This document shows, in pieces, positions 1-64,000 of a stretch of DNA of 64,000 bases. Made by a program: the position numbers and the translations under genes. Position 1 is the first letter of the stretch, and every line of letters begins with the position of its first letter. Origin of the DNA: Blastocladiella emersonii ATCC 22665 (taxonomy: Eukaryota; Fungi; Blastocladiomycota); contig JANHCV010000018.1 in assembly GCA_025594325.1 (NCBI GenBank), forward strand, positions 149,279-213,278, in the 5' to 3' direction. The notes below the pieces were generated by a model. It ran no database searches and was not told the origin of the DNA. It saw only the letters and a list, made by a program, of their open reading frames with translations.

Positions 1-1501
1 CGTCGTCGTGCTCCTGGAGCCCGCCAACACGCCAGTCGAGCCTGCGCGGCGCCAGAGCAGCCTCGAGCGCCATCATGGCGTCGATCTCGTCGCAGCAAGG
101 GTTGCTCCCCACCTCCCACACGCGCACGGAGGTCAGATGATCCGTGAGCCCGCGGAGTGTGCCCATGGACAGATCGGTCGCGGTCTAGACGACGGGCGTG
201 ATGCGGGGCGGCGGTCAGTACATCCTGCTTCGCTCGCACAGCGGAAAGTGGACATGCTCTCGTACCAAGTCGATCGCGGTGAGCAGGCGCGTCTCACTTG
301 CCGGGACCAGTGCTGGGACCAGTTCAGCGAGCGAAATACCGCGCAGTGACGCTGTCTGAAGCTTGCTCAGGCCCAGAAGCCCGGCCACGTCGCACGCGGG
401 TAGAGTACGGCACTCGGAGACGTCCAACACGCGAATGTGCGGGTAAGTTCGCACGAACGAGCTCGAGACGAGGGCAAGCCCGGGGTTTTTGGCAAGGGAG
501 AGTTCTGCGAGGTACGGGTGCGGGTGTGGTTGCGCGCACGCGTCGTCGAGCAGCGGACCCTCAATCCCGCACTGCGCGAGGTCCAGTCGTTCGAGGAGCG
601 GAAAGCGACCGCGCGGATCCAGGATTGCGCGGGCTCCTTCTAGACCAACCCCGCTACCAATTAAAACGAGTGAGCGCAACGAGGTTTGCGCCTGGAGACT
701 GGGCATGAGTTTGGTCCACGCCAGGTCTAGACCAAGGGCTGGGTTGCCAGCAACTTCCAGAGTGGAGAGGGCCGGGCAGACCGACAGCCAGTGGCGAAGG
801 TCGACTGGGTCCAGCGCGCAGTCGGAAAGATCAAGCGACTCGAGCGTGTGGAGGAGGACGGAGGTGCCACTGGTCGCGAGGGAAGGACGGTCGTTGCCCG
901 CAAGATTAAGTCGGGTCAAGGAGCTTGCGACGGCGCCAAGTATGGTTGCGACAAAGGAAAGCTCGCCCTTGAGGGCCTTCCCCGAGAGATCGAGTGACTT
1001 GAGATGTGATTGGGCGCCGAGATGTTCAAATCCGCGAGCCCAAGGAGCAGCGTCTTCGTCTTGGGCCGTCTGCGGCAGCGCGGCTACGGACTCGAGCGAG
1101 AACGATGACGCGAGGTATGCCTCGAGCGCCGCGTGGGCAGACGCGGGAATCGTGTGCCCCGAGAGCTGCAGGGAATGGACACCGTGTTCCGCGGCCTCAG
1201 CATCCGCGAGAGCGGCAAAGAGGCGGGCCCAATCCTCCTCGCGAATGCGCTGCGATGAAAAGAGCACAAGCTCGCGAATCCGTCCCGACCGGATCTGTGC
1301 CAGAAGCGGGTCAAGGGGGGCAGGTTGGGGACCCCATGCGGAGCCAGCGTTGCCCCACACCATGGAGGAAATCAAGCGTTGAAGATCTTGGTACCGTTGC
1401 TGCGGGTCGAGCGGGAGCTGAGGGAAGGCTTGAGTTTGCAGTGCTAGCTCGACGGCCGACGGATCGGCGTTGTATTTTAGCATCACGTGAGTCGTCTCCA
1501 T
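1..1501 (-). CDS. RNI-like leucine-rich repeat protein; exons 1501-266 and 184-<1, 3' end runs off the window, true start uncertain
   Basis: ORF 215-1501 has repeated LxxLxLxxN/C motifs (LKSLDLSGK, LTRLNLAGN, LESLDLSDC, LSTLEVAGN, LERLDLAQC, LAELSLAKN, IRVLDVSEC). Removing intron 265-185 continues the frame as ...IDL|TATDLSMGTLRGLTDHLTSVRVWEVGSNPCC..., another LRR-like unit. Confidence 0.85.
185..265 (-). other. Spliceosomal intron (81 nt) in the LRR gene
   Basis: Minus strand GTACGA donor, TACTGAC branch point, CTAG acceptor; splicing removes the ORF-track stop and keeps an open LRR-like frame. Confidence 0.8.
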
Positions 1502-1809
1502 GCGCTTGCTCTATTGAGCCGCACACTCTGCAAAACGCTAAACGGTGCAACCTGAACCTCTGGTGCACGACTTGTAGTTCCATCGCCAAGTCCGGGGGAA
1601 CCAAAGCTCAAATTTGCCCTGATCAATAAACGTAGTCGGTTTAGTAACAAGCCGTCGCCGTCATGTGTTGTGGAACGACAAGAGCTGCTCGCGACGTGCT
1701 TGCCAGGTGCTCGAGCTGGGCCTCGGTTGAGTTGTTCAGCTCAGGTCATGTACAGCGGAATGGGTGGGTGAACGATTAATTACAGATTTAGCGAGCATGG
1801 CACAGGCCC

Positions 1810-2151
1810 TTAGCGGGCGTCAAACTGGACCACTGCGGGCGGGGATGGCAAAGTACGTGAGTGGTGCAACATTATCGGTGAGGTGGGCCAGCGAACCGGT
1901 CCGTGAGCGAGGCGACGTACTCTTGCTTGTCCGCTTCTTGTAGAGCACACGGTGGCCACAGTTGTAGCAACGGATGGGGGCCTTGGGGCTGATTTTCACG
2001 TCGCCATGGCAAGCTTAGCGCGATGAGAGGGGCGTTAGCGGCGAGATGGCTCAAAGCGTGCGGAAGGCAGTCCATCGCGCATACCAGCGCAGGTGTAGGT
2101 CATATCCGCCGCCGGTTGCGGGGGCGCCGAGTACAGCGTCGAAGAATCCAT
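1810..2151 (-). CDS. RPB12: DNA-directed RNA polymerases I/II/III subunit RPABC4 (RPB12/POLR2K family), 60 aa, exons 2151-2085, 2013-1921, 1832-1810
   Basis: Manual splicing gives MDSSTLYSAPPQPAADMTYTCAACHGDVKISPKAPIRCYNCGHRVLYKKRTSKMVQFDAR*, with the family's CxxC...CxxC zinc ribbon, GHRVLYKKRT and terminal QFxAR. Intron 2084-2014 is GTATGC..GCTAAC..TAAG and intron 1920-1833 is GTACGT..GCAG. Not in the ORF track. Confidence 0.95.
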
Positions 2152-2376
2152 GGTTGCTCACGTAATGCAATAGGTCAGGGCGTGGTCAACGGTCTCGAGT
2201 CGGCGACAGCGCGCGTGGCGGCGGGACCAGGCGCCAGCCCCGGATGTGGGGCCGATGGCGTCAAGGTCAGCTGACATCAACTGACCTGTCGTCGTGCGTC
2301 GTCGCCCAGCGCCGAATCTTTGCCTCGTCGCAATACTGCTTGCCACTGTCCAACGACGGATCACACTCACATTGAA

Positions 2377-3830
2377 ATGGAGACGAATGACTCGCAGACT
2401 CAGCGCAAACGGTCGCGATGGGCTGGCAGCGACAGTGAGAGCGAGGAAAACTCGAGGGCAGCGACCTCCCAGTCTCACCGCCGTGAGCGCAAGCGCAAAC
2501 CCGAGCGTGTGACCCATGCCGCATCCTGCGCATCAGACACCCTCGCTTCAACCCTTGCTGTACCAAACGAGGTGTCCGCAGCACTCCGCCGCCGACACGG
2601 CGACCCTGCAGCCCAGCGCACGCTCCGTGTTGACGACGCGCCTCTGATTCCGGCAGCCCCAACATCTTTTGATCCGGCTCTGGCATTAGCGTCATCAAGC
2701 CACCACGAAAGGCCTTTCGATGTTTCTCCTGCTCTCGTCACACGGGCAAGGCTCCCGCCGATCCGCCCTTGCCGGGGCGTGGACTCGTATGAGAAACTCA
2801 ACCGTATCGACGAGGGTGCATACGGAATTGTTTATCGTGCCCGTTGCCGCGCAACCCACGAAATCGTTGCTCTAAAGAAGCTGAAACTGGATCGCGAACG
2901 CCATGGGTTTCCCGTGACAGCCCTGCGCGAGATTGAGACTTTACTTCGCATGCGCGATCATCCCCACATTGTGCACGTCCGAGAAATCGTGATGGGGAAC
3001 AGCCTTACTTCTATCTTCATCGTCATGGACTATGTTGAGCATGATCTCAAGGCACTGTTAGCAACCATGCCAAGCCCCGGGTTCCACCCGTCCGAAATCA
3101 AGACCCTCCTCGCTCAACTTCTCGGTGCCGTGGCGCATTTGCACAAACACTGGCTTGTACACCGCGACCTTAAAACTTCCAACCTCTTGCTCAACAACTG
3201 CGGTGAACTTAAGGTTGCCGACTTTGGACTGATTCGCAAGTTTTCAACGCAATCTGGAGCAGACGGTGGCGGCGCAAGCGACCCCCATGGCCGTCCACTT
3301 ACTCAACTTGTCGTTACCCTGTGGTATCGCGCGCCTGAGCTCCTGCTAGGCGCCGTTCAGTACGCGTCTGCGATCGATATGTGGAGTGTCGGCTGCATTT
3401 TCGCAGAACTCTACCTCCGCGAGCCCCTCTTTTCGGGCAGAGGAGAGGTCGACCAGCTTGACAAGATTGGAAAATTGCTTGGAAACTTTCCCACGTCCCT
3501 CCACGAACTCCCCTTGGCAAAGAACTTGAAACTTGGTCATTATGGCGCGGGTCCGGGCCTTCGTTCGCGGATTCCTAGCATGTCGAATTCCGGCTTAGAC
3601 CTCCTGTCGAGACTACTAGACCTTGATCCTTCGCATCGTATCACGGCGGAGGAAGCTCTCGCCCATCCTTACTTTACGAGGTGCGTGTCGACGGGGGACC
3701 GCGCGTTATAGCATGTACTGACATCTCGCCATTCCCTAAACCTAAAACCTAAAGTGAGAAGCCTGCGCCTCGAGACCCCTCATTATTTCCAAGTTTCCCC
3801 GCCAAAGGCGAACTTAGAGGGTACGTTTAA
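2377..3830 (+). CDS. CDK11: Cyclin-dependent kinase of the CDK11/CDK10 (PITSLRE) group; likely ATG at 2377, intron 3681-3754
   Basis: YEKLNRIDEGAYGIVYRA, VALKKLK, GFPVTALREI (PITSLRE-type helix), HRDLKTSNLL, KVADFG, VVTLWYRAPELLLG. Splicing GTGCGT..TACTGAC..AAAG (3681-3754) yields HPYFTSEKPAPRDPSLFPSFPAKGE, resembling the CDK11 post-kinase tail. The final stop (3828-3830) is uncertain because GTACGT at 3821 may be another donor. Confidence 0.9.
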
Positions 3831-4094
3831 CTCGCTAATTTACCCGGCTACTTAAAATTGACCCGGACCACTGTCATTCCCATCCATTAGAGCCTGTGAA
3901 AACTCGACAGACTCACCTGCTGTTGCAACTTGATTATTGTGCACAGTTCCGTTGGGTTTCAAGTGTACCCGCAGTCGCACCTGCTACAGAACAACTGGTT
4001 GTTGATGAGGCGAACCCAAGGCGGCGAACTTTCCATACAACCACAGGTTTGTGATCATGCAAAAGTGACATTGTGAAGTCAAAGCGCGATTTGA

Positions 4095-5353
4095 GGCGCC
4101 ATTGACCATGCCCGCGACACAGAGAAGGCGATGTACGTGTACTTTGAGGACAAGAGCAAGGCGTTCGACAAGGTCCCGCACTCGATCCTGCGGCTGGCCC
4201 TGCGCCGCATCCGCCTGCCTGAGCCGTTCATTCAGTTGTACTGCACGCAGGTCCTTGAGGGTCGCACATCGCGTGTGATCACTGCGTATGGGCTCACCGA
4301 ACCGATCCCGTGTCTCCGCGGCGTGCCCCAGGGCGCAGTTGAGTCCCCGCTAATGTTGTCCTGTCTCTACGATTCCCTCCTTTGTAACGATATTTCGAAA
4401 GGCGCAGATGACGCATTTCCCCTCCTCCCGTATGCAGGTCGCGGTTCCTTCAAGTCCGCGCACACTCGGCCTGGTTGCAACCCGCCGAGACGACTTTTCC
4501 CTGGCACCAAGCACCGCCCACCCGTCAAGCTCAAGAACCTGTCGTTCGTGGACGACGCGGCCTTCTTCGCGTGCACGCCAGGCGGCCTCCACCGCACCGT
4601 GGCACGCGTCGACTCGTTCAACGCGGCCTGCGGCATTCGATCCAATGCCGCCAAGGGCGCCGTGCTGTCAATCAACTCTAAACGAGAGCCGCTGATCAAG
4701 TCCAACGACGTCGAGGTGCCAAGGATTTCGAGCGATGGAGCGTTTCGCTACCTGGGCGTCTTCCTCAACGCGACGGGCACGGGTGGCCCGGCCGTAGAGG
4801 CCATGGAGGAGACGTTCGGGCGCGCGATGCTCTCGCTGCGGAACAAGAAGATCACGGCCAAGATGGCCGTGTACGTCATCAACGCGGTCGTCTGGCCTGC
4901 CATGGTGTACCGCTCTCGCAACTTTGTGCCCAAGCTCCGCCGCTTGCAGAAGTGGGACGCGTCCGCGCGTGCTCTCATTCGCAAGAAGCTGCATGTCGCG
5001 AGCACCTTCCACGCGTCAGCGCTCCACCATCCCGCGATCCTCGCGCTTGCGTCCATCGAGGAGCAGGTCACCCGGTACCACATGAAGGCGGTCATCTCTT
5101 CTCTCAACCACTGCGATACCATGATCCGCACGGCAGTCCGCTGCTCGCTCTCAGCTTTGCAGACCTATCTCACGGTCCCTTACTCGCCGCTTGCCGTCCC
5201 AACCAGCGAGCCGACTGCGGAGAGTCCATGTTACTTTGGCGGCTTGCTCGAACTCATGCGCGTCCGGCGCCTCTCGATTGCCGATCTTAGCGGCGAGTAT
5301 ACGATCGGCAACCCCGCCACGGACTTGCCAATTCGCCAGCTGGTGCCCTGGGG
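4095..5353 (+). pseudogene. Non-LTR reverse transcriptase domain (N-terminally truncated) and thumb region, up to a frameshift
   Basis: DKSKAFDKVPH, GVPQGAVESP, LSFVDD (YADD-type site), FRYLGVFL. After ...QLVPWG the protein-like sequence continues in the frame of ORF 5381-7381 (QISPTVRRAMRGYF...), implying one missing base in GGGG at 5350-5353. Confidence 0.9.
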
Positions 5354-5752
5354 CAGATCTCTCCCACTGTCCGCCGCGCCATGCGGGGCTACTTCATCTC
5401 GAACATCTCGCAGTTTACTCAGCATGGCAAGATTGCAGATGGCATCAACCCACAGTGCGCTGAGGAGTTGCTCTCGGGCCGCTTCAACCCAGCGACCAGG
5501 TGTTTTGTGCAAGTCCCTGAGCGAACCCAGTTCATCAATCTCGCGACCTGCTTGCTCCAGGCCTATCTCGCCGACCCTCATGCCCATCCACAGTGGGGCC
5601 CGTGTGCAGCCTTTTGCACCCGCGAGCCTTACCCACTCAGTGTTGACGACGAAGTTGCTCCACCCATCAACATCCGCGAGGCCTTCACCGCAGGCCTTCG
5701 CGTGACACAAGTCCCGGCTCAGGCGGGCCCGCTCGACCTCGATCCTGCACTG

Positions 5753-6182
5753 GTGCCTGTCTACACGGACGGCTCCATGGTGCCAGCTGCGGACGGGGTC
5801 GGGTCGTCCCGCCTTGGAGCGGGCGTGTGGTTCCCGACGCTTGGTGTCCGTCTGTCAGCGCGCGTCTCGCCTGGCGTAGCTTCTTCTACGCGAGCCGAGG
5901 CGTGGGCGATCGCGCTTGCGGTCGCCGCGGCACCACAGCGCTCGCGGATCCACATCTACTCTGACTCCCAGGCTGCCATTGCATCGGCCATCCGCGTCCT
6001 ATCGTTCCTTTCCTCCTCCTCGTCTGATTCTGGCTTTCCTTCTTCCCTCACTTCTACTGACGCATGGTCGTTTGCAGTGGCAGCCGCGCGTGCCCGCCGC
6101 GTGACCTTCACAATCTCCTGGGTCCGCGGGCACGCCGGCGTTGAGGGGAACGAGATCGCTGACGGGCTCGCCGCTGACGGGA
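5753..6182 (+). CDS. RNase H domain of the retrotransposon polyprotein
   Basis: VYTDGS, SSTRAEAWAI, IYSDSQAAI, WVRGHAGVEGNEIAD: complete D-E-D-H-D catalytic set. Confidence 0.93.
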
Positions 6183-6568
6183 TCAATCTGGCCCAAGAGC
6201 TCGTCCTCGCTCCCCCCTTCGCCAAACAGATCCGGTTAGATGTTCAGCATGCGCTGTATTTTGATGACGTCCCCGTTCCCACATCCTCCACTGCACTCCT
6301 CAAGATCCTGTCCACTGCACGCTGCGATGCGACTATCCGCTCCAAGTCCGCCCTCCTCTCCTTCCTCCACACCTCCCCTGACCCCGATGAGCACCCTGAC
6401 ATGCTTGCGACCTCACTGGCCATTGGCTCCGGCTCCCGCCCGCTCGATAAGCGCACCTCCAGCGCTGCGAACCGCGACATCGTCTATCGCGTTCGCCACC
6501 TCCTTGGGATCACACCCACTCGCTCACTACTGCACGCCCGCCATCCTACTCTAGTCACTTCACCGGTG

Positions 6569-6619
6569 TGTCCTAGGTGCCAAGTAGCCATTGACGACGG
6601 AAGCCACTGGATGATCTGC
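6569..6619 (+). other. C-terminal CCHC zinc knuckle of the non-LTR ORF
   Basis: CPRCQVAIDDGSHWMIC = C-x2-C-x8-H-x3-C, located downstream of RT/RNase H as in many non-LTR elements. Confidence 0.8.
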
Positions 6620-8555
6620 ACCCGTAACGCCGCGGCCGTGTCCGCCGCGCTGGGCTCTGCCCAAAAGTCCATTGAGCGGTATTCTTGCCGCGCCGCTGCC
6701 TCTGTTGCCGCCGCCGCCGCCGCTACTGCTGCGGCCGCATCCACTGCACGAGCACCGAATGCGCCCACTCCACCTCCACCTCCACCTGCACCACCACCGC
6801 CTCTCTCTCCTGTCCAAGGCGAGGACCTCAGCACGCCCGGCTACGCCATGGTCGGCGAGTCCATTGCTGGTGCAACTGACGCCCTCCACAACTTTGGCAC
6901 TCGACTCGCAGCGTCCATCTGGCGCGACCCCGACGCCCTCTCCCGCCTCGCCGGCTGCGTTCTACGCGTCCGCGACGTGTCGTTCGGCTCGCGGGCCCTC
7001 CAACTCGACCGCGCCCTCACCCGGCCCGTCCTCGCGGCCATCACGTCCGTCGCCTCCCGATCCCTCTGGCGCGGCGCCTGGCTCTCTCACTCTGCTGGCT
7101 GCACCGAGGCCGACCCACTCGATTTTTCTGAAGCTCCGCCGCACGAGCCGCGTGAGCGGGCCCACCGCCCATTTGGCCAGCCCATTGCCACACTCAAGTT
7201 CATCAACCGCCACCACTACTGCTCTCGCTGTCTGAGCTCGCTCCATTCCCACGTCCCCCACCCGTCTGGGCGTGAAGAAAACCCGCCCGTGTGCCCGCCG
7301 TCCACCGCGGCCCAGGCGGCTCTTGTTGCAGATCCCTCCGTCCGACTTTGGTTGCTCGGTTCCCCAAGGCACATTCGGTGATGTGACTAGACCAAGGATC
7401 GGCGCAGTCGACGCAAGTCCAGTGGCACCAGGTGTTTGCGCGCGGTACTGACCCATCCACTTTCTCTCGTTCTGACCACGATGAAACGCATGATCCGCCA
7501 CTGAATGGCGCTGACGCACAAAAGAAAAAGAAAAAGAAGGAGAAAAACAAAATAAAGAGAAACGCAACAAGAAGAACGTCCGCACAAAAAGATGGAAAAA
7601 CATCTGACGAACCTCACAGGCCATGCCCAATACCACAGCACTGCCACTGGTCCATTGGCATGTCCTCGCGCTCTAGCTGGTCACGCCAGCGTGTCTCTCT
7701 GCTCGGTCTCTCTTTACTGCTCTTCGTTCGCTCTCTTAGCTCGCTGCTCGAGCTCGCTCTCTCTTCGCCTCGTTCGCCCATCTCTCTCGTACTCCCCTCT
7801 CCTCCCACAATTCTTCCCCCTATGCTCCTCGACGTGCACGGTCCGGGCTTGTCGTACTGCGGCTTGCCCACAAAAAGGCTGCTGCCCGTTGCACAGTGGA
7901 TATTCTGGTTGCAGTCCACAACCGCAGTTAAGGAATAAATGCATTGGTTCCAAAATAAAGAGGGTTCCGAGCAGCTCCTCTGTCTATCCGCGTGAAACCA
8001 CTCACCCGCTGACGGACGTACACCGCGCACCGTGCAGCGCGCACAGCACACAGCGCCCGACGCACCCCGCGGTGCGCACACGGCGCAAACGGCCACCCTG
8101 GTGTCACACACACTCGCATGAACGGCAGGCATGCAAGGCGTCCTCAACTCAACAATGATTTATCATCCAGGCTTGCTACTCGCTCCAACGGGTGCGCCTG
8201 CCTGCCCTCCCGGTGCCGTTGATTGATTGATGGGTGCGCCAGCCCCTGTTGCCAGCCAAGTGGCAAGCAACACCACAGCACCTGCGTCGCCCTGGCCACC
8301 GTACCTTGGAAACAGCGTAGCAGCCGTACTGCTTCACAGGGCTGCAGAGGGCTGGCTGCGGAGGGCTGAGGCGGCAGGGCTCCTGCTGCAGGAAGGAGAC
8401 AGTGCTGGGGCCAAGGAGTGCTAGGGACGACAAACTGAATGGTGAATGACCCACACACCACATGCTCCTGGCAGGAGAGCGTGTGGGCGTGCGGGCCTGT
8501 GTCCGTGCGTGCCTGTGTCCGTGCGTGCCTGGATTAGACCTCCATCACAAGCGCC

Positions 8556-8631
8556 AAGTGACCAAGTGACCAAGGTGACCAAGTGACCAAGGTGACCAAG
8601 GTGACCACGGTGACCAAGGTGACCAAGTGAC
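8556..8631 (+). repeat. 8/9-bp minisatellite (AAGTGACC/AAGGTGACC, about 9 units), present in every unit
   Basis: Directly visible; a 17-bp shorter allele occurs in units 11, 13, 14, 15 and 16. Confidence 0.95.
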
Positions 8632-9044
8632 ACACAAGCACCAAGCTAGGGTGGCCGGGCGGCCATGGAACGTACTGCATGGGTACCAATACCGTGGACT
8701 GGCCGCGGCCATTAATCGCAGCACAGCCCTGCCTGGCTCAGGACGCGGCGGGCGTGGGAGGCGGGCAGGGTAGATAGGTAGCAGCAGCAGGACCTGGCTA
8801 GCTGGCTGTCAAACAGCACGAGTGAAGGGGTGCGTGAGGGAGGGTGTGTTGAATGAATGGATGGGTGGATGCAGGCAGACCTTCATACGTGTCGTGCGTG
8901 ATGAGGATTGGCTGGCCACTATCCACCCACCAACGCCATGGCATGGCTGCGGGTGTCGCTGCGTGCGCCTTGGCGGGTGGTAGTGGAGCTAAAGTGGTGT
9001 CGTGGGGCTCTTGGGGTCCCCTTTCCTTCCTGTCTGGCCTAGGT

Positions 9045-9059
9045 GGGTGGGTGGGTGGG
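9045..9059 (+). other. G-quadruplex-forming motif GGGTGGGTGGGTGGG, one per unit
   Basis: Four G3 tracts with single-T loops, a sequence class known to form stable parallel G4 in vitro; in vivo folding not shown. Confidence 0.7.
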
Positions 9060-9245
9060 CGGACGTAGCGCGCATGCGGGCGGGCAAGCTAGGAACGTTG
9101 CTCACGCAATGGATCATGTATTTCATGGAACGTAGTCTGGACAGCAGAGAGGGGGATGTCCGGCCCAATCGGACCCTCCACGAATCACAATATGCACGCA
9201 ATGAATTGACCGATGATAGGGCCGTACCAAACCAGCCACGTAGAC

Positions 9246-10152
9246 AATTGTCATGGTAGTCGAACAAAACCATATTCAAATCTTTGACTACACGCTTGTC
9301 CAGCTAGCCAGGGACCCATAAATCACAGTATCGACCCAACTAAATATTTGACAACGGAAAGATAGTAAACCAGCCTCGTACATAATTGTCATGGTACTCA
9401 AACAAAACCATATTCAAAACCTTGACTTCCCGCATGTCCAGCTGGCCAGGGACCCATAAATCACAGTATCAAACCGACAAAGTATCTGACAACAGAAATA
9501 TGGTAAAACAGCCACGCGGATAATTGTCATGGTACTCAATCAAAACCATATTCAAATCTTTGCTTTCCTGCATGTCCAGCTGGTTGAGGACCCATAAATC
9601 GTAACGTCAAAGCAACAGTATATCTGACCATAGAAGTATAGTAAACCAGCCACTCTGGCAACTGTCATGGTACTCAAACAAAACCATACTCAAATCTTCG
9701 ACTTCCCACATGTCCAGCAGGTTGGACACCCATAAATCACAGTATCAAACCAACGAAATATCTGACCACATGAGTATATATAACCGACCGCGTAGGTAAT
9801 TGTCTTGATACTCAAACAAAACCATATTCAAATCTTTCACTTCCCGCTTGTCCAGCTAGCCAGGGACCCATAAATCACAGTATCACAGCAACGCAATATC
9901 TGACCAAAGAAATATCGTAAACCAGGCACGTAGATAATTGTCATGGTACTCAAACAAAACCATAGTCAAATCTTCGAGTGCCCCATGTCCAGGTGGGCAA
10001 GGGCCTATAAATCACAGTATTGAACCAAGAAAACACCTGACTGACGATCGGGATGTATCAAACCCGCCACGCTGATAATTGTCATGGTACTCAAACATAA
10101 CCATACTCAGCCAAATCTTCGCATACCCTCACGTCCAGGTGGGCGAGGAACC
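9246..10152. repeat. Nested array of 138-bp subrepeats (6 full plus 1 partial, plus a degenerate half copy at about 9166-9245), present in every unit
   Basis: AATTGTCATGG-like heads at 9246, 9384, 9522, 9660, 9798, 9936 and 10077 (period 138; last 141). Copies are roughly 70-80% alike by eye. Confidence 0.95.
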
Positions 10153-10266
10153 AAAGCGCCAGATATTCAAATCTACCGCTTTGTGCACACTCCACTAGCC
10201 AACTCTTCGATCCCCTAATAATGGAGCCCGTCGTCAAAGTGCACGGTCCAATCAACTAAGTAAACA

Positions 10267-10350
10267 GCCAACCTGCCAGCCTGCCAACCTGCCAGCCTGC
10301 CAGCCTGCCAACCTGCCAACCTGTCAACCTGCCACCTTGCCTACCTGCTA
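10267..10350 (+). repeat. 8-bp minisatellite (CCTGCCAA/CCTGCCAG), present in every unit
   Basis: Directly visible; one extra 8-mer in all units except 1 and 9. Confidence 0.93.
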
Positions 10351-10609
10351 TCCGAACACCCACACCGCCTCGCAAGTCATTGGGGGCCCGCGCTCTCTGG
10401 TTGCCGTCCCAGCCAACAAACGAATGAATGATGAGCCCTGGCAGCCTGGCAGCCTGCCACACTGACAGCCTGACTGACAGCGCCCACCCAGTAGATATTA
10501 TCTATCTCGTAGGTAGTCTGGGACGACTTTGTTAGTCAATACACGACCAGTCTCCTCCTGGCTGCCGGCTCTGCTGTCCACTCCAAGTCCTGCATGATGA
10601 TGGGCCAAG

Positions 10610-11294
10610 GAGGGTTCCGAGCAGCCGCGGCCCAAGCGGCTCTTGTTGCAGATCCCTCCGTCCGACTTTGGTTGCTCGGTTCCCCAAGGCACATTCGGTG
10701 ATGTGACTAGACCAAGGATCGGCGCAGTCGACGCAAGTCCAGTGGCACCAGGTGTTTGCGCGCGGTACTGACCCATCCACTTTCTCTCGTTCTGACCACG
10801 ATGAAACGCATGATCCGCCACTGAATGGCGCTGACGCACAAAAGAAAAAGAAAAAGAAGGAGAAAAACAAAATAAAGAGAAACGCAACAAGAAGAACGTC
10901 CGCACAAAAAGATGGAAAAACATCTGACGAACCTCACAGGCCATGCCCAATACCACAGCACTGCCACTGGTCCATTGGCATGTCCTCGCGCTCTAGCTGG
11001 TCACGCCAGCGTGTCTCTCTGCTCGGTCTCTCTTTACTGCTCTTCGTTCGCTCTCTTAGCTCGCTGCTCGAGCTCGCTCTCTCTTCGCCTCGTTCGCCCA
11101 TCTCTCTCGTACTCCCCTCTCCTCCCACAATTCTTCCCCCTATGCTCCTCGACGTGCACGGTCCGGGCTTGTCGTACTGCGGCTTGCCCACAAAAAGGCT
11201 GCTGCCCGTTGCACAGTGGATATTCTGGTTGCAGTCCACAACCGCAGTTAAGGAATAAATGCATTGGTTCCAAAATAAAGAGGGTTCCGAGCAG
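10610..11294 (+). repeat. 15-bp (16 with an ambiguous C) target-site duplication GAGGGTTCCGAGCAG around each short copy
   Basis: ...GGGCCAAG-GAGGGTTCCGAGCAG-[CCGCGG...AAAATAAA]-GAGGGTTCCGAGCAG-CTCCTC... Confidence 0.93.
10625..11279 (+). mobile_element. 655-bp 3' fragment of the non-LTR element (first of 16 short copies, one per unit; last at 60724-61378)
   Basis: Matches 7305-7959 except one G/A at 7315. Flanked by direct repeat GAGGGTTCCGAGCAG at 10610-10624 and 11280-11294; ends in AATAAA plus an 8-nt A-rich tail. Confidence 0.95.
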
Positions 11295-62200: not shown

Positions 62201-64000
62201 CAGCAGCAGGACCTGGCTAGCTGGCTGTCAAACAGCACGAGTGAAGGGGTGCGTGAGGGAGGGTGTGTTGAATGAATGGATGGGTGGATGCAGGCAGACC
62301 TTCATACGTGTCGTGCGTGATGAGGATTGGCTGGCCACCATCCACCCACCAACGCCATGGCATGGCTGCGGGTGTCGCTGCGTGCGCCTTGGCGGGTGGT
62401 AGTGGAGCTAAAGTGGTGTCGTGGGGCTCTTGGGGTCCCCTTTCCTTCCTGTCTGGCCTAGGTGGGTGGGTGGGTGGGCGGACGTAGCGCGCATGCGGGC
62501 GGGCAAGCTAGGAACGTTGCTCACGCAATGGATCATGTATTTCATGGAACGTAGTCTGGACAGCAGAGAGGGGGATGTCCGGCCCAATCGGACCCTCCAC
62601 GAATCACAATATGCACGCAATGAATTGACCGATGATAGGGCCGTACCAAACCAGCCACGTAGACAATTGTCATGGTAGTCGAACAAAACCATATTCAAAT
62701 CTTTGACTACACGCTTGTCCAGCTAGCCAGGGACCCATAAATCACAGTATCGACCCAACTAAATATTTGACAACGGAAAGATAGTAAACCAGCCTCGTAC
62801 ATAATTGTCATGGTACTCAAACAAAACCATATTCAAAACCTTGACTTCCCGCATGTCCAGCTGGCCAGGGACCCATAAATCACAGTATCGAACCAACAAA
62901 GTATCTGACGACAGAAATATGGTAAAACAGCCACGCGGATAATTGTCATGGTACTCAATCAAAACCATATTCAAATCTTTGCTTTCCTGCATGTCCAGCT
63001 GGTTGAGGACCCATAAATCGTAACGTCAAAGCAACAGTATATCTGACCATAGAAGTATAGTAAACCAGCCACTCTGGCAACTGTCATGGTACTCAAACAA
63101 AACCATACTCAAATCTTCGACTTCCCACATGTCCAGCAGGTTGGACACCCATAAATCACAGTATCAAACCAACGAAATATCTGACCACATGAGTATATAT
63201 AACCGACCGCGTAGGTAATTGTCTTGATACTCAAACAAAACCATATTCAAATCTTTCACTTCCCGCTTGTCCAGCTAGCCAGGGACCCATAAATCACAGT
63301 ATCACAGCAACGCAATATCTGACCAAAGAAATATCGTAAACCAGGCACGTAGATAATTGTCATGGTACTCAAACAAAACCATAGTCAAATCTTCGAGTGC
63401 CCCATGTCCAGGTGGGCAAGGGCCTATAAATCACAGTATTGAACCAAGAAAACACCTGACTGACGATCGGGATGTATCAAACCCGCCACGCTGATAATTG
63501 TCATGGTACTCAAACATAACCATACTCAGCCAAATCTTCGCATACCCTCACGTCCAGGTGGGCAAGGAACCAAAGCGCCAGATATTCAAATCTACCGCTT
63601 TGTGCACACTCCACTAGCCAACTCTTCGATCCCCTAATAATGGAGCCCGTCGTCAAAGTGCACGGTCCAATCAACTAAGTAAACAGCCAACCTGCCAGCC
63701 TGCCAACCTGCCAGCCTGCCAGCCTGCCAGCCTGCCAACCTGCCAACCTGTCAACCTGCCACCTTGCCTACCTGCTATCCGAACACCCACACCGCCTCGC
63801 AAGTCATTGGGGGCCCGCGCTCTCTGGTTGCCGTCCCAGCCAACAAACGAATGAATGATGAGCCCTGGCAGCCTGGCAGCCTGCCACACTGACAGCCTGA
63901 CTGACAGCGCCCACCCAGTAGATATTATCTATCTCGTAGGTAGTCTGGGACGACTTTGTTAGTCAATACACGACCAGTCTCCTCCTGGCTGCCGGCTCTG

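Follow-up and report, generated by a model that had tools for sequence, protein, structure and literature searches.

The window, which is the whole 64,000-nt stretch of DNA analysed, passes from single-copy genes into a satellite array through a long copy of a LINE. That a retroelement without an upstream TSD forms the hinge between the two was the core of the original prediction, and it was confirmed by homology, 15-mer and flank searches. The features on which the argument depends are the following.

2320 to 3711, + strand: CDK11-like protein kinase gene (Pkinase PF00069, E 3e-60), the last single-copy gene before the hinge
3712 to 4096, no strand: unique spacer on the 5' side of the long copy, without TSD, host-unit or retroelement sequence
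4096 to 4097, no strand: junction of unique DNA and retroelement, present in Logan short-read contigs
4097 to 7959, + strand: long LINE copy, 5'-truncated inside the RT, frameshifted and, from Pfam matches and translation, dead
7305 to 7959, + strand: stretch of 655 bp common to the long copy and every array fragment
7960 to 7974, + strand: downstream 15-bp half-site GAGGGTTCCGAGCAG, which acts as the TSD of the short fragments
7960 to 10609, + strand: first host unit (unit 0), the edge unit of the array
7960 to 64000, + strand: array of the 3.3-kb satellite (16 full units, one partial), reaching the end of contig C10
10610 to 11294, + strand: first short fragment with the 15-bp TSD on either side (fragment proper 10625-11279)

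The best named relatives of the CDK11-like gene were Blastocladiomycota CDK/CDK11 proteins (B. britannica 66%, Coelomomyces 65%), and the long LINE copy begins 385 bp past this gene. Its start had been placed at 4095, but homology to the family begins at 4097; positions 4095-4096 are GG, unlike the family, which has TC at that place. The sequence 3300-4094 occurs once in the genome. Neither 1-4096 nor the 10 kb preceding the window showed similarity to retroelement or host unit, in agreement with the earlier statement that host-unit sequence is missing upstream. No upstream TSD of the long copy was found: the 15-mer before 4097 had no exact second copy in the assembly, and its matches with one mismatch equalled the chance control, so the TSD partner predicted for these 15 bases was not recovered beyond chance.

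The left junction was compared with independent Logan contigs from short reads, all three runs being of one sample. The contigs of runs X1 and X2 each span 3000-4160 with 0 differences, and the contig of the third run ends at 4083. These contigs carry single-copy depth at the junction, although contig depth is no measure of copy number and no result here rests on it. The left junction is real.

The RT of the long copy lies at about 4143-4761, with a PF00078 match within 4131-5705 that enters the profile at position 72 of 205. It is followed by an RNase H at about 5753-6184 (PF00075, E 2e-15) and by a C-terminal CCHC knuckle at 6569-6628 with the motif CPRC...H...C. A 1-base frameshift is located in a G run near 5349, and the ORF stops at 7381. 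The 3' UTR (7382-7951) is followed by the tail AAAATAAA (7952-7959); the 3' end as a whole is CCAAAATAAA, and GAGGGTTCCGAGCAG starts at 7960. The RT is of the non-LTR type, with 33-36% identity over 96-98% of the query to proteins that contain APE, RT and RNase H. Judging from these domains, the long copy is a dead member of an RNase H-bearing, APE-type LINE family of I/Tad1-like architecture.

The N-terminal APE and ORF1 are absent from the long copy, which is truncated in the RT, and also from the longest copies of the sub-family, whose common 5' end falls shortly upstream of the RT region. On C9, an older relative possesses a 463-aa coiled-coil ORF1 and an APE (PF03372, E 8e-11); a relative with APE is found on C21 too. 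As these parts are present in the relatives but not in the sub-family, the long copy is a non-autonomous derivative of such a family. Copies on C4, C5, C7, C9, C11 and C19 pass upstream of the point equivalent to 4097. A shared family 5' end at 4097 or at C19:36685 was considered and rejected as an artefact of a truncated reference; longer copies extend upstream.

Tails in the family are A-rich and 7-10 nt long, and truncation points vary among copies. Two internally deleted lineages are each present at two sites with different truncation points, indicating that the family spreads through RNA. The C10 fragment has a TSD of 15 bp, and that of the C17 fragment measures about 17 bp. These clean 15-17-bp TSDs of fragments inside arrays imply staggered nicks made by an endonuclease, which was probably supplied in trans. 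A literature search found no description of the satellite or the LINE of this genome.

The host-unit ORFs had no match in Pfam, and no Rfam family matched in the window. No run of four TTAGGG telomere repeats occurs anywhere in the assembly. In the arrays of C17, each unit has one copy of the 15-mer GAGGGTTCCGAGCAG, that is, an empty site. The short fragment was therefore genuinely inserted, with a TSD of 15 bp, into a satellite older than itself. An origin by tandem duplication would mimic a 10-20-bp TSD only about 0.4% of the time, as estimated from the 2635-bp unit. The tail of the short copies in the window is AAAATAAA in 7 of 16 and AAAAAAAA in the other 9. The units on C11 cluster apart, with 4-16 differences from C10 type B, which is compatible with one array or two. 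The ends of C10 and C11 align in register at 99.86% over 1388 bp, as any two units do.

Unit 0 has one private SNP (8920 T) and otherwise combines C10 type-B with C11-type states in a mosaic, which is the expectation for an edge unit. This bears on whether the hinge was created by an assembly mis-join, in which a real long copy at the CDK11 locus let the assembler step through the shared 655 bp into the array. C10 ends in array, the 655-bp identity is too long for short contigs to bridge (7304/7305 to 7960), and the frameshift in a homopolymer hints at long-read error. The left junction, however, is present in the independent short-read contigs, no contig has an alternative 3' flank for the long copy, and the private SNP and mosaic haplotype of unit 0 are typical of a real edge unit. 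The same architecture was also assembled independently at other borders, as described below, and a 655-bp repeat would in general be short for long-read assemblers. We consider a mis-join highly improbable.

The last approximately 645 bp of the long copy had been said to match the short copies; the match was confirmed, but its length is 655 bp. Compared with the neighbouring short copy, 654 of 655 bases are identical, and the sole difference is G7315A. Position 7315 is A in all 16 short copies of the window and in all 8 on C11, and G in the long copy and most of the family, as anticipated for a marker of the switch between long-copy and fragment states; it is the one informative site that marks this switch. 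Over 7316-7959, long and short copies have 11 lineage-private states in common. The insertion site and tail of the long copy are identical to those of the neighbouring short fragment, so that the earlier reading of a common tail followed by a common 15-bp half-site, AAAATAAA and then GAGGGTTCCGAGCAG at 7960, was correct. The T inside this tail had further been taken as a sign of common origin. The identity held, but its strength was reduced: AAAATAAA is found in only 7/16 short copies, and a T at the fifth tail position is also seen in a C19 copy of the other 3'-UTR subfamily. A history in which the long copy came first and the short fragments were derived from it was rejected; it would need either a deletion whose end fell precisely on the TSD or a duplication whose breakpoint happened to look like a 15-bp TSD (about 0.4% by the above estimate).

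The identical site could also have arisen if a site-preferring endonuclease had led an independent second insertion to the exact nick of the short fragment, with a large deletion on the 5' side. The strong preference of the family for the satellite and its short, stereotyped tails of 7-10 nt fit this explanation, and the recurrence of T at tail position 5 in the unrelated C19 copy means that the tail may be partly templated. The nine host-unit junctions of the family, however, are at nine positions, and the same nucleotide, the same 8-nt tail and the 11 private substitutions are much better explained by descent from a resident fragment. A second insertion is, in our judgement, quite unlikely.

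The original prediction attributed the hinge to a crossover in the 655 bp, by which a circle may have been integrated in a Campbell-like manner. Of this we retain that the long copy probably acquired its 3' end from an array fragment through a homology-dependent event at a point to the right of 7315; the circle is not supported. Campbell-like integration would insert the whole array by a single crossover between a circular or multimeric satellite unit and a chromosomal long copy, and the left junction observed is its expected product. The right end it predicts, a short fragment followed by unique DNA with the 3' flank of the long copy and the TSD partner, is absent from the assembly, in which C10 stops inside the array at 64000 and the array is not fully assembled. 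No AAAATAAA in the assembly precedes anything but the array half-site, which leaves no orphan tail. The array end on C11, the only other stretch of the C10 array type in the assembly, proved to be a different LINE hinge: the last unit breaks off within a 138-bp subrepeat, where it meets the tail of another LINE copy, inverted, truncated and internally deleted, and unrelated DNA lies beyond. Integration of a circle also requires a resident copy in unique DNA, a kind of which the 13 family junctions described below include none, and it leaves the recurrence of the hinge architecture at eight further borders unexplained. We give it very little probability; it most likely gives way to a more ordinary and more general mechanism.

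The LINE family was present at all nine array borders examined (C10, C11, C19, C16, C4, C5, C17, C2 and C20). Eight of them, all but C20, were read to the base, and in 7 of these 8 the satellite adjoins the tail and non-array DNA adjoins the 5' end. The C2 border has a bridging insertion too: there, the tail of a second copy lies in an older one, and the satellite is met by the 5' end. The hinges on C11 and C16 also have the tail on one side, the 5'-truncated end on the other and non-contiguous flanks. No TSD was found at the three hinges whose flanks were compared (C10, C11 and C16).

Every assembled insertion of the family has its A-rich 3' end in the 2.6-kb satellite unit or in another family copy. 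The independent 3' junctions (n=13) comprised 9 in host units, 4 in other family copies and 0 in unique DNA. The binomial probability of this bias was 5e-13 if arrays constitute 2.1% of the genome and 1.7e-4 if they constitute 20%. Survivorship could add to the bias, insertions in gene-dense DNA being purged. The host-unit junctions were at nine positions (approximately 7960, 8899, 8904, 9135, 9189, 9229, 9403, 9666 and 10222) and in both orientations; the family is region-specific for the satellite, not site-specific. No fragment was present at the junction sites of the eight other borders in the array units read, indicating that formation of a hinge does not generally depend on crossover with an array fragment.

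These results also weigh on the main rival, homologous recombination at the DNA level. According to it, a 5'-truncated long copy resident behind the CDK11-like gene recombined with the 655-bp fragment to the right of 7315, by crossover, break-induced replication or gene conversion, with a deletion or translocation. The near-identity over 655 bp is ample substrate, and the G/A difference at 7315 fits the switch point. The long and short copies belong to one sub-lineage, so that the fragment could even descend from the long copy. The latter follows the gene closely and in the same orientation, which makes read-through transcription conceivable. A resident copy with a unique 3' flank is, however, unlikely a priori when 0/13 family 3' junctions are in unique DNA. 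The assembly contains neither an orphan 3' flank nor a TSD partner, and in the array units read, the junction sites of the eight further borders offered no fragment for recombination. We regard DNA recombination as possible, with clearly less than even prospects.

The reading that we prefer, to which we give about an even chance, is that the hinge is a rearrangement coupled to retrotransposition, similar to an L1-mediated deletion, anchored by homology in the resident 655-bp fragment and with the 5' end of the cDNA joined to unique DNA. A longer family RNA (or cDNA) would have served as template for DNA synthesis, with the primer on the satellite side. This primer would be a DNA end within the 655-bp fragment already in place, paired by homology at a point to the right of 7315; homology priming inside an old fragment is suggested by the known biochemistry of LINEs. 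Priming inside the resident fragment would explain why 644 identical bases were kept together with the tail and target half-site of the old insertion. The new strand would have stopped at 4097, and its 5' end would then have been joined, in the absence of homology, to DNA broken 385 bp beyond the CDK11-like gene; the intervening DNA would have been deleted or displaced, as happens in LINE insertion-mediated deletion or translocation. Crossover or gene conversion with a long DNA copy would give the same product, which makes RNA and DNA templates indistinguishable. The border as such most likely reflects faulty insertions by a satellite-targeting element.

If retrotransposition-coupled rearrangement is the correct explanation, LINE insertion-mediated rearrangement is not only an accident of cancer cells but can become fixed repeatedly in a fungal germline, and it can define where large satellite arrays begin and end. 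It would also mean that an early-diverging fungus has a LINE lineage confined to one non-coding macrosatellite, giving a handle on the nature of the arrays (centromere, heterochromatin block or fragile domain) and on the assembly breaks there. A wider proposal, which we hold to be doubtful, is that the 2.6-4.1-kb macrosatellite arrays are a defined chromosomal domain, for example regional centromeres, and that the sub-family without APE and ORF1 is a dedicated satellite-targeting element whose aberrant integrations keep resetting both borders. If so, the three arrays that can be paired (C10/C11, C2/C5 and C20/C19) would be flanked by LINE copies with their tails inward, and LINE-mediated deletion would be a regular germline shaper of array borders, not only a somatic accident.

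LINEs of tandem arrays include R1/R2 in rDNA and telomeric or centromeric LINEs such as HeT-A/TART or G2/Jockey-3. The family described here is similar to them in that a LINE lineage is confined to one class of tandem repeat. Unlike R1/R2, it has no single target nucleotide; its insertions were found at nine positions of the unit, not all at one. The target also differs from those of the tandem-array LINEs in being a non-coding 2.6-kb macrosatellite without Rfam or Pfam match, and the tails of the border copies face inward. Campbell-type integration or re-integration of extrachromosomal circular repeats resembles the hinge in that a single crossover yields the left junction observed; here, however, the right junction and TSD partner were sought in the assembly and not found, and the candidate far end is built otherwise.

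TE-bearing satellites (McGurk and Barbash 2018, PMC5932611) are comparable to the array in having a TE fragment fixed in every unit and repeated insertion into a preferred target. In contrast to TE-derived satellites (PMC5932611), the satellite here predates the fragment, and the border of the array, not its origin, is at issue. Endonuclease-independent L1 insertions at DNA breaks (PMC1920257) also have no TSD; such insertions patch breaks, and the array sub-family is without APE. They are often 3'-truncated (PMC1920257), whereas the 3' tail of the hinge is intact and clean TSDs of 15-17 bp flank the in-array fragments of C10 and C17.

According to published work, L1-mediated deletions and translocations are recognised by the bridging of distant DNA without a TSD, one junction having poly(A) and the other a 5'-truncated end (PMC7058536). 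The long copy shows the signature of LINE-mediated deletion, with its tail at one junction, its 5'-truncated end at the other, no TSD and non-contiguous flanks. The hinge thus resembles L1 insertion-mediated events (PMC7058536) in having the tail at the priming site, the 5'-truncated end on distant DNA, no TSD and a bridging position. It differs from them (PMC7058536) in that its 3' end would be inherited from a resident fragment, not newly made, and in that the deleted interval is here putative. It differs as well in being fungal, fixed in the germline and recurrent at the borders of one satellite family.

The window covered the final 64 kb of the 213,278-bp contig C10, in an assembly of 21 contigs and 32.65 Mb. 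As originally predicted, a long retroelement (LINE) copy joined single-copy DNA to a tandem satellite array: the flank at 3300-4094 was single-copy in the genome, and the array occupied all sequence from 7960 on. The features are listed below in window coordinates.

215-1501, minus strand: gene for a leucine-rich-repeat protein of 428 residues, upstream of the kinase gene
2320-3711: CDK11-type kinase gene; best named relatives in Blastocladiomycota (Blastocladiella britannica 66%, Coelomomyces 65%)
4097-7959: long LINE copy (the hinge)
7960 to the end of C10: tandem array with periods of 3311-3362 bp

The start of C10 was within a CAG/CTG-rich coding stretch, not a telomere. Runs of four TTAGGG repeats, with one mismatch allowed, were found in none of the 21 contigs; the telomeres are either missing from the assembly or made of another repeat.

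The long copy contained RT, RNase H and CCHC knuckle domains and a one-base frameshift in a G run near 5349; this copy is dead. The similarity of other family members to the window stopped exactly at 4097, while upstream of this point they still matched one another, indicating that the long copy is truly 5ʹ-truncated inside the RT domain. No host-unit (satellite) or retroelement sequence was found in 1-4096 or in the 10 kb preceding the window, in agreement with what had been claimed for the DNA upstream of the copy. Logan contigs of two short-read runs, both from one sample, crossed the junction 4096/4097 (3000-4160) with no differences, indicating that the left junction was present in the short-read data.

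Each unit of the C10 array was composed of a 2.64-kb non-coding host segment, which included 6.4 copies of a 138-bp subrepeat and had no match in Rfam or Pfam, and a 655-bp LINE 3ʹ fragment with a perfect 15-bp duplication, GAGGGTTCCGAGCAG, on both sides. Unit 0 was of type B, units 1-7 of type A, and units 8-15 of type B again, with about 40 substitutions between the types in one subrepeat patch. Unit 0 (7960-11279) combined C10 type-B with C11-type states as a mosaic, and had one private SNP (8920 T). Mis-assembly of the hinge is unlikely, because its left junction was confirmed by the short-read contigs, unit 0 had the private SNP and mosaic haplotype expected for an edge unit, no alternative 3ʹ flank for the long copy was present in the assembly, and the same border architecture was assembled independently elsewhere.

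Host-unit arrays reached at least nine contig ends (the ends of C10, C11, C2, C20 and C17 and the starts of C5, C19, C4 and C16), and the inner border of the array was analyzed on each of these contigs. A satellite-targeting LINE family without APE was present at all of these borders, with the tail facing the array in most cases.

C10, C11, C19, C16, C4, C5 and C17: LINE-family copy immediately adjoining the last host unit, tail facing the array and 5ʹ end facing non-array DNA
C19: the 5ʹ end of the border copy meets the tail of another copy
C2: second LINE copy whose tail falls within an older copy, at the equivalent of 5693, and whose truncated 5ʹ end meets the satellite
C20: two head-to-tail LINE copies pointing towards the array

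The second copy on C2 is again a bridge. No TSD was found at the C11 LINE border or at those of C10 and C16. When independent 3ʹ junctions were counted over all loci (n=13), nine fell within host units, each at a different position and with both orientations represented, four were in other family copies, and none was in unique DNA. The head-to-tail copies were located at L038/L002 (C19:36685) and L046 (C20:1789426), and in these pairs the tail of another copy immediately preceded the start of the 5ʹ-truncated copy. The C17 array (C17:2062349-2209773; L009/L010, G000:C17:2194700-2203051) belonged to the same host-unit family and had 36 units of about 4.1 kb. Every C17 unit carried a fixed 1242-bp LINE fragment (equivalent to 6712-7959, 92% identical), which differed from the C10 fragment and lay at host position about 9189, with a TSD of about 17 bp.

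Public relatives of the LINE family showed 33-36% identity and were proteins of 1600-1800 residues with APE, RT and RNase H, the best match aligning from its residue 445 on. In the array-associated sub-family, the longest copies (C4, C7 and C5) began at one common 5ʹ end immediately upstream of the RT region, and lacked APE and ORF1. This 5ʹ end or its deletion lineages were found at L004 (C7), L003 (C4), L007 (C5), L005 (C11) and L006 (C9). The C4 and C7 copies also had at least 808 bp of 5ʹ flank in common, a segmental duplication holding a GRDP-like ORF. Two 3ʹ-UTR types were distinguished, type I in the C10 copies, the C17 array fragment and one C7 copy, and type II in all others. APE-bearing ORF2 relatives with ORF1 were found at two loci.

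G000:C21:507174-510683 (L039): same ORF1 as the C9 copy, plus a 1666-residue open frame
G000:C9:161188-164709 (L040): older copy, 82% identical, extending into the APE domain, with a 463-residue coiled-coil ORF1

Relatives of this type are possibly autonomous and could provide endonuclease and RT in trans. Two internal-deletion lineages, missing the equivalents of 4492-5542 and 6563-7657, each occurred at two loci with different 5ʹ truncation points, indicating that the family spreads through RNA. The deleted copies are non-autonomous but still mobile, and were presumably helped in trans.

The final 655 bp of the long copy and the next 15 bp were identical to the adjacent short fragment except at 7315, the site of the G/A difference noted originally: G in the long copy and A in 24/24 short copies of C10 and C11. 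The A was also found in the independent C17 fragment, and was probably already present in the RNA lineage from which that fragment and the short copies came. The tail of the long copy, which had been regarded as a signature, was indeed the same as in short copies, but only 7/16 short copies in the window carried AAAATAAA, and T was found at this tail position in an unrelated C19 copy as well, which weakens this part of the original argument.

The short fragment represents a true insertion with a TSD, because empty sites exist (the C10 site was empty in the C17 array) and mimicry of a TSD by duplication is rare. The reverse order, a long copy followed by tandem duplication, was rejected; a 10-20-bp TSD was estimated to be mimicked only about 0.4% of the time. 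The 3ʹ end of the long copy appears inherited from a resident fragment, since both ended at the same nucleotide with the same 8-nt tail and shared, over 7316-7959, 11 lineage-private substitutions. Its 5ʹ part appears to derive from a longer family member, because G at 7315 is the state in most of the family.

The original prediction ascribed this product to a crossover in the shared 655 bp, possibly by Campbell-like integration of a circle. A crossover there is reasonable, but the circle version was unsupported by the C11 end and by the search for a TSD partner. C10 stopped within the array, and the TSD/short-fragment junction was limited to C10 (16 occurrences) and the C11 end (8 occurrences, opposite strand). 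The C11 array ended at 2,814,790 (host position about 9403, within the 138-bp subrepeat), where it met the tail of an inverted, internally deleted type-II LINE copy 5ʹ-truncated at 2,811,735, beyond which was unrelated DNA. The 15 bases before 4097, predicted to recur at the far end, had no second copy in the assembly beyond chance, and all AAAATAAA tails in the assembly were followed by the array half-site. The Campbell prediction fails if C10 and C11 belong together as opposite sides of a single unresolved array; otherwise the far end is just missing from the assembly. Three pairs of contig ends (C10/C11, C2/C5 and C20/C19) matched in array subtype and had compatible orientations, suggesting that the arrays represent internal gaps in the assembly.

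Crossover at the DNA level alone, with a long copy already present at the CDK11 locus, would yield the same product, but it is disfavoured because no family member was seen with its 3ʹ flank in unique DNA. For the join to unique DNA at 4096/4097, we propose instead a polar mechanism, in which synthesis would begin at the satellite, with capture of the 5ʹ end elsewhere, because 3ʹ ends, unlike many 5ʹ ends, were without exception located in satellite or element DNA, and because the same architecture recurred where the array units read had no fragment at the junction site. On C10, an extra step may have occurred, in which homology within the resident 655-bp fragment allowed priming or strand invasion.

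The wider finding is the presence of the LINE family at all array borders examined, beyond the single C10 hinge; we found no paper describing this pattern for the B. emersonii genome. Array-specific LINEs are already known. LINE-mediated rearrangement is also known, and the signature of the C10 hinge matches that of L1-mediated deletions and translocations, in which distant DNA is bridged with poly(A), 5ʹ truncation and no TSD (PMC7058536). Endonuclease-independent patching of breaks (PMC1920257) would be a close variant of the proposed mechanism.
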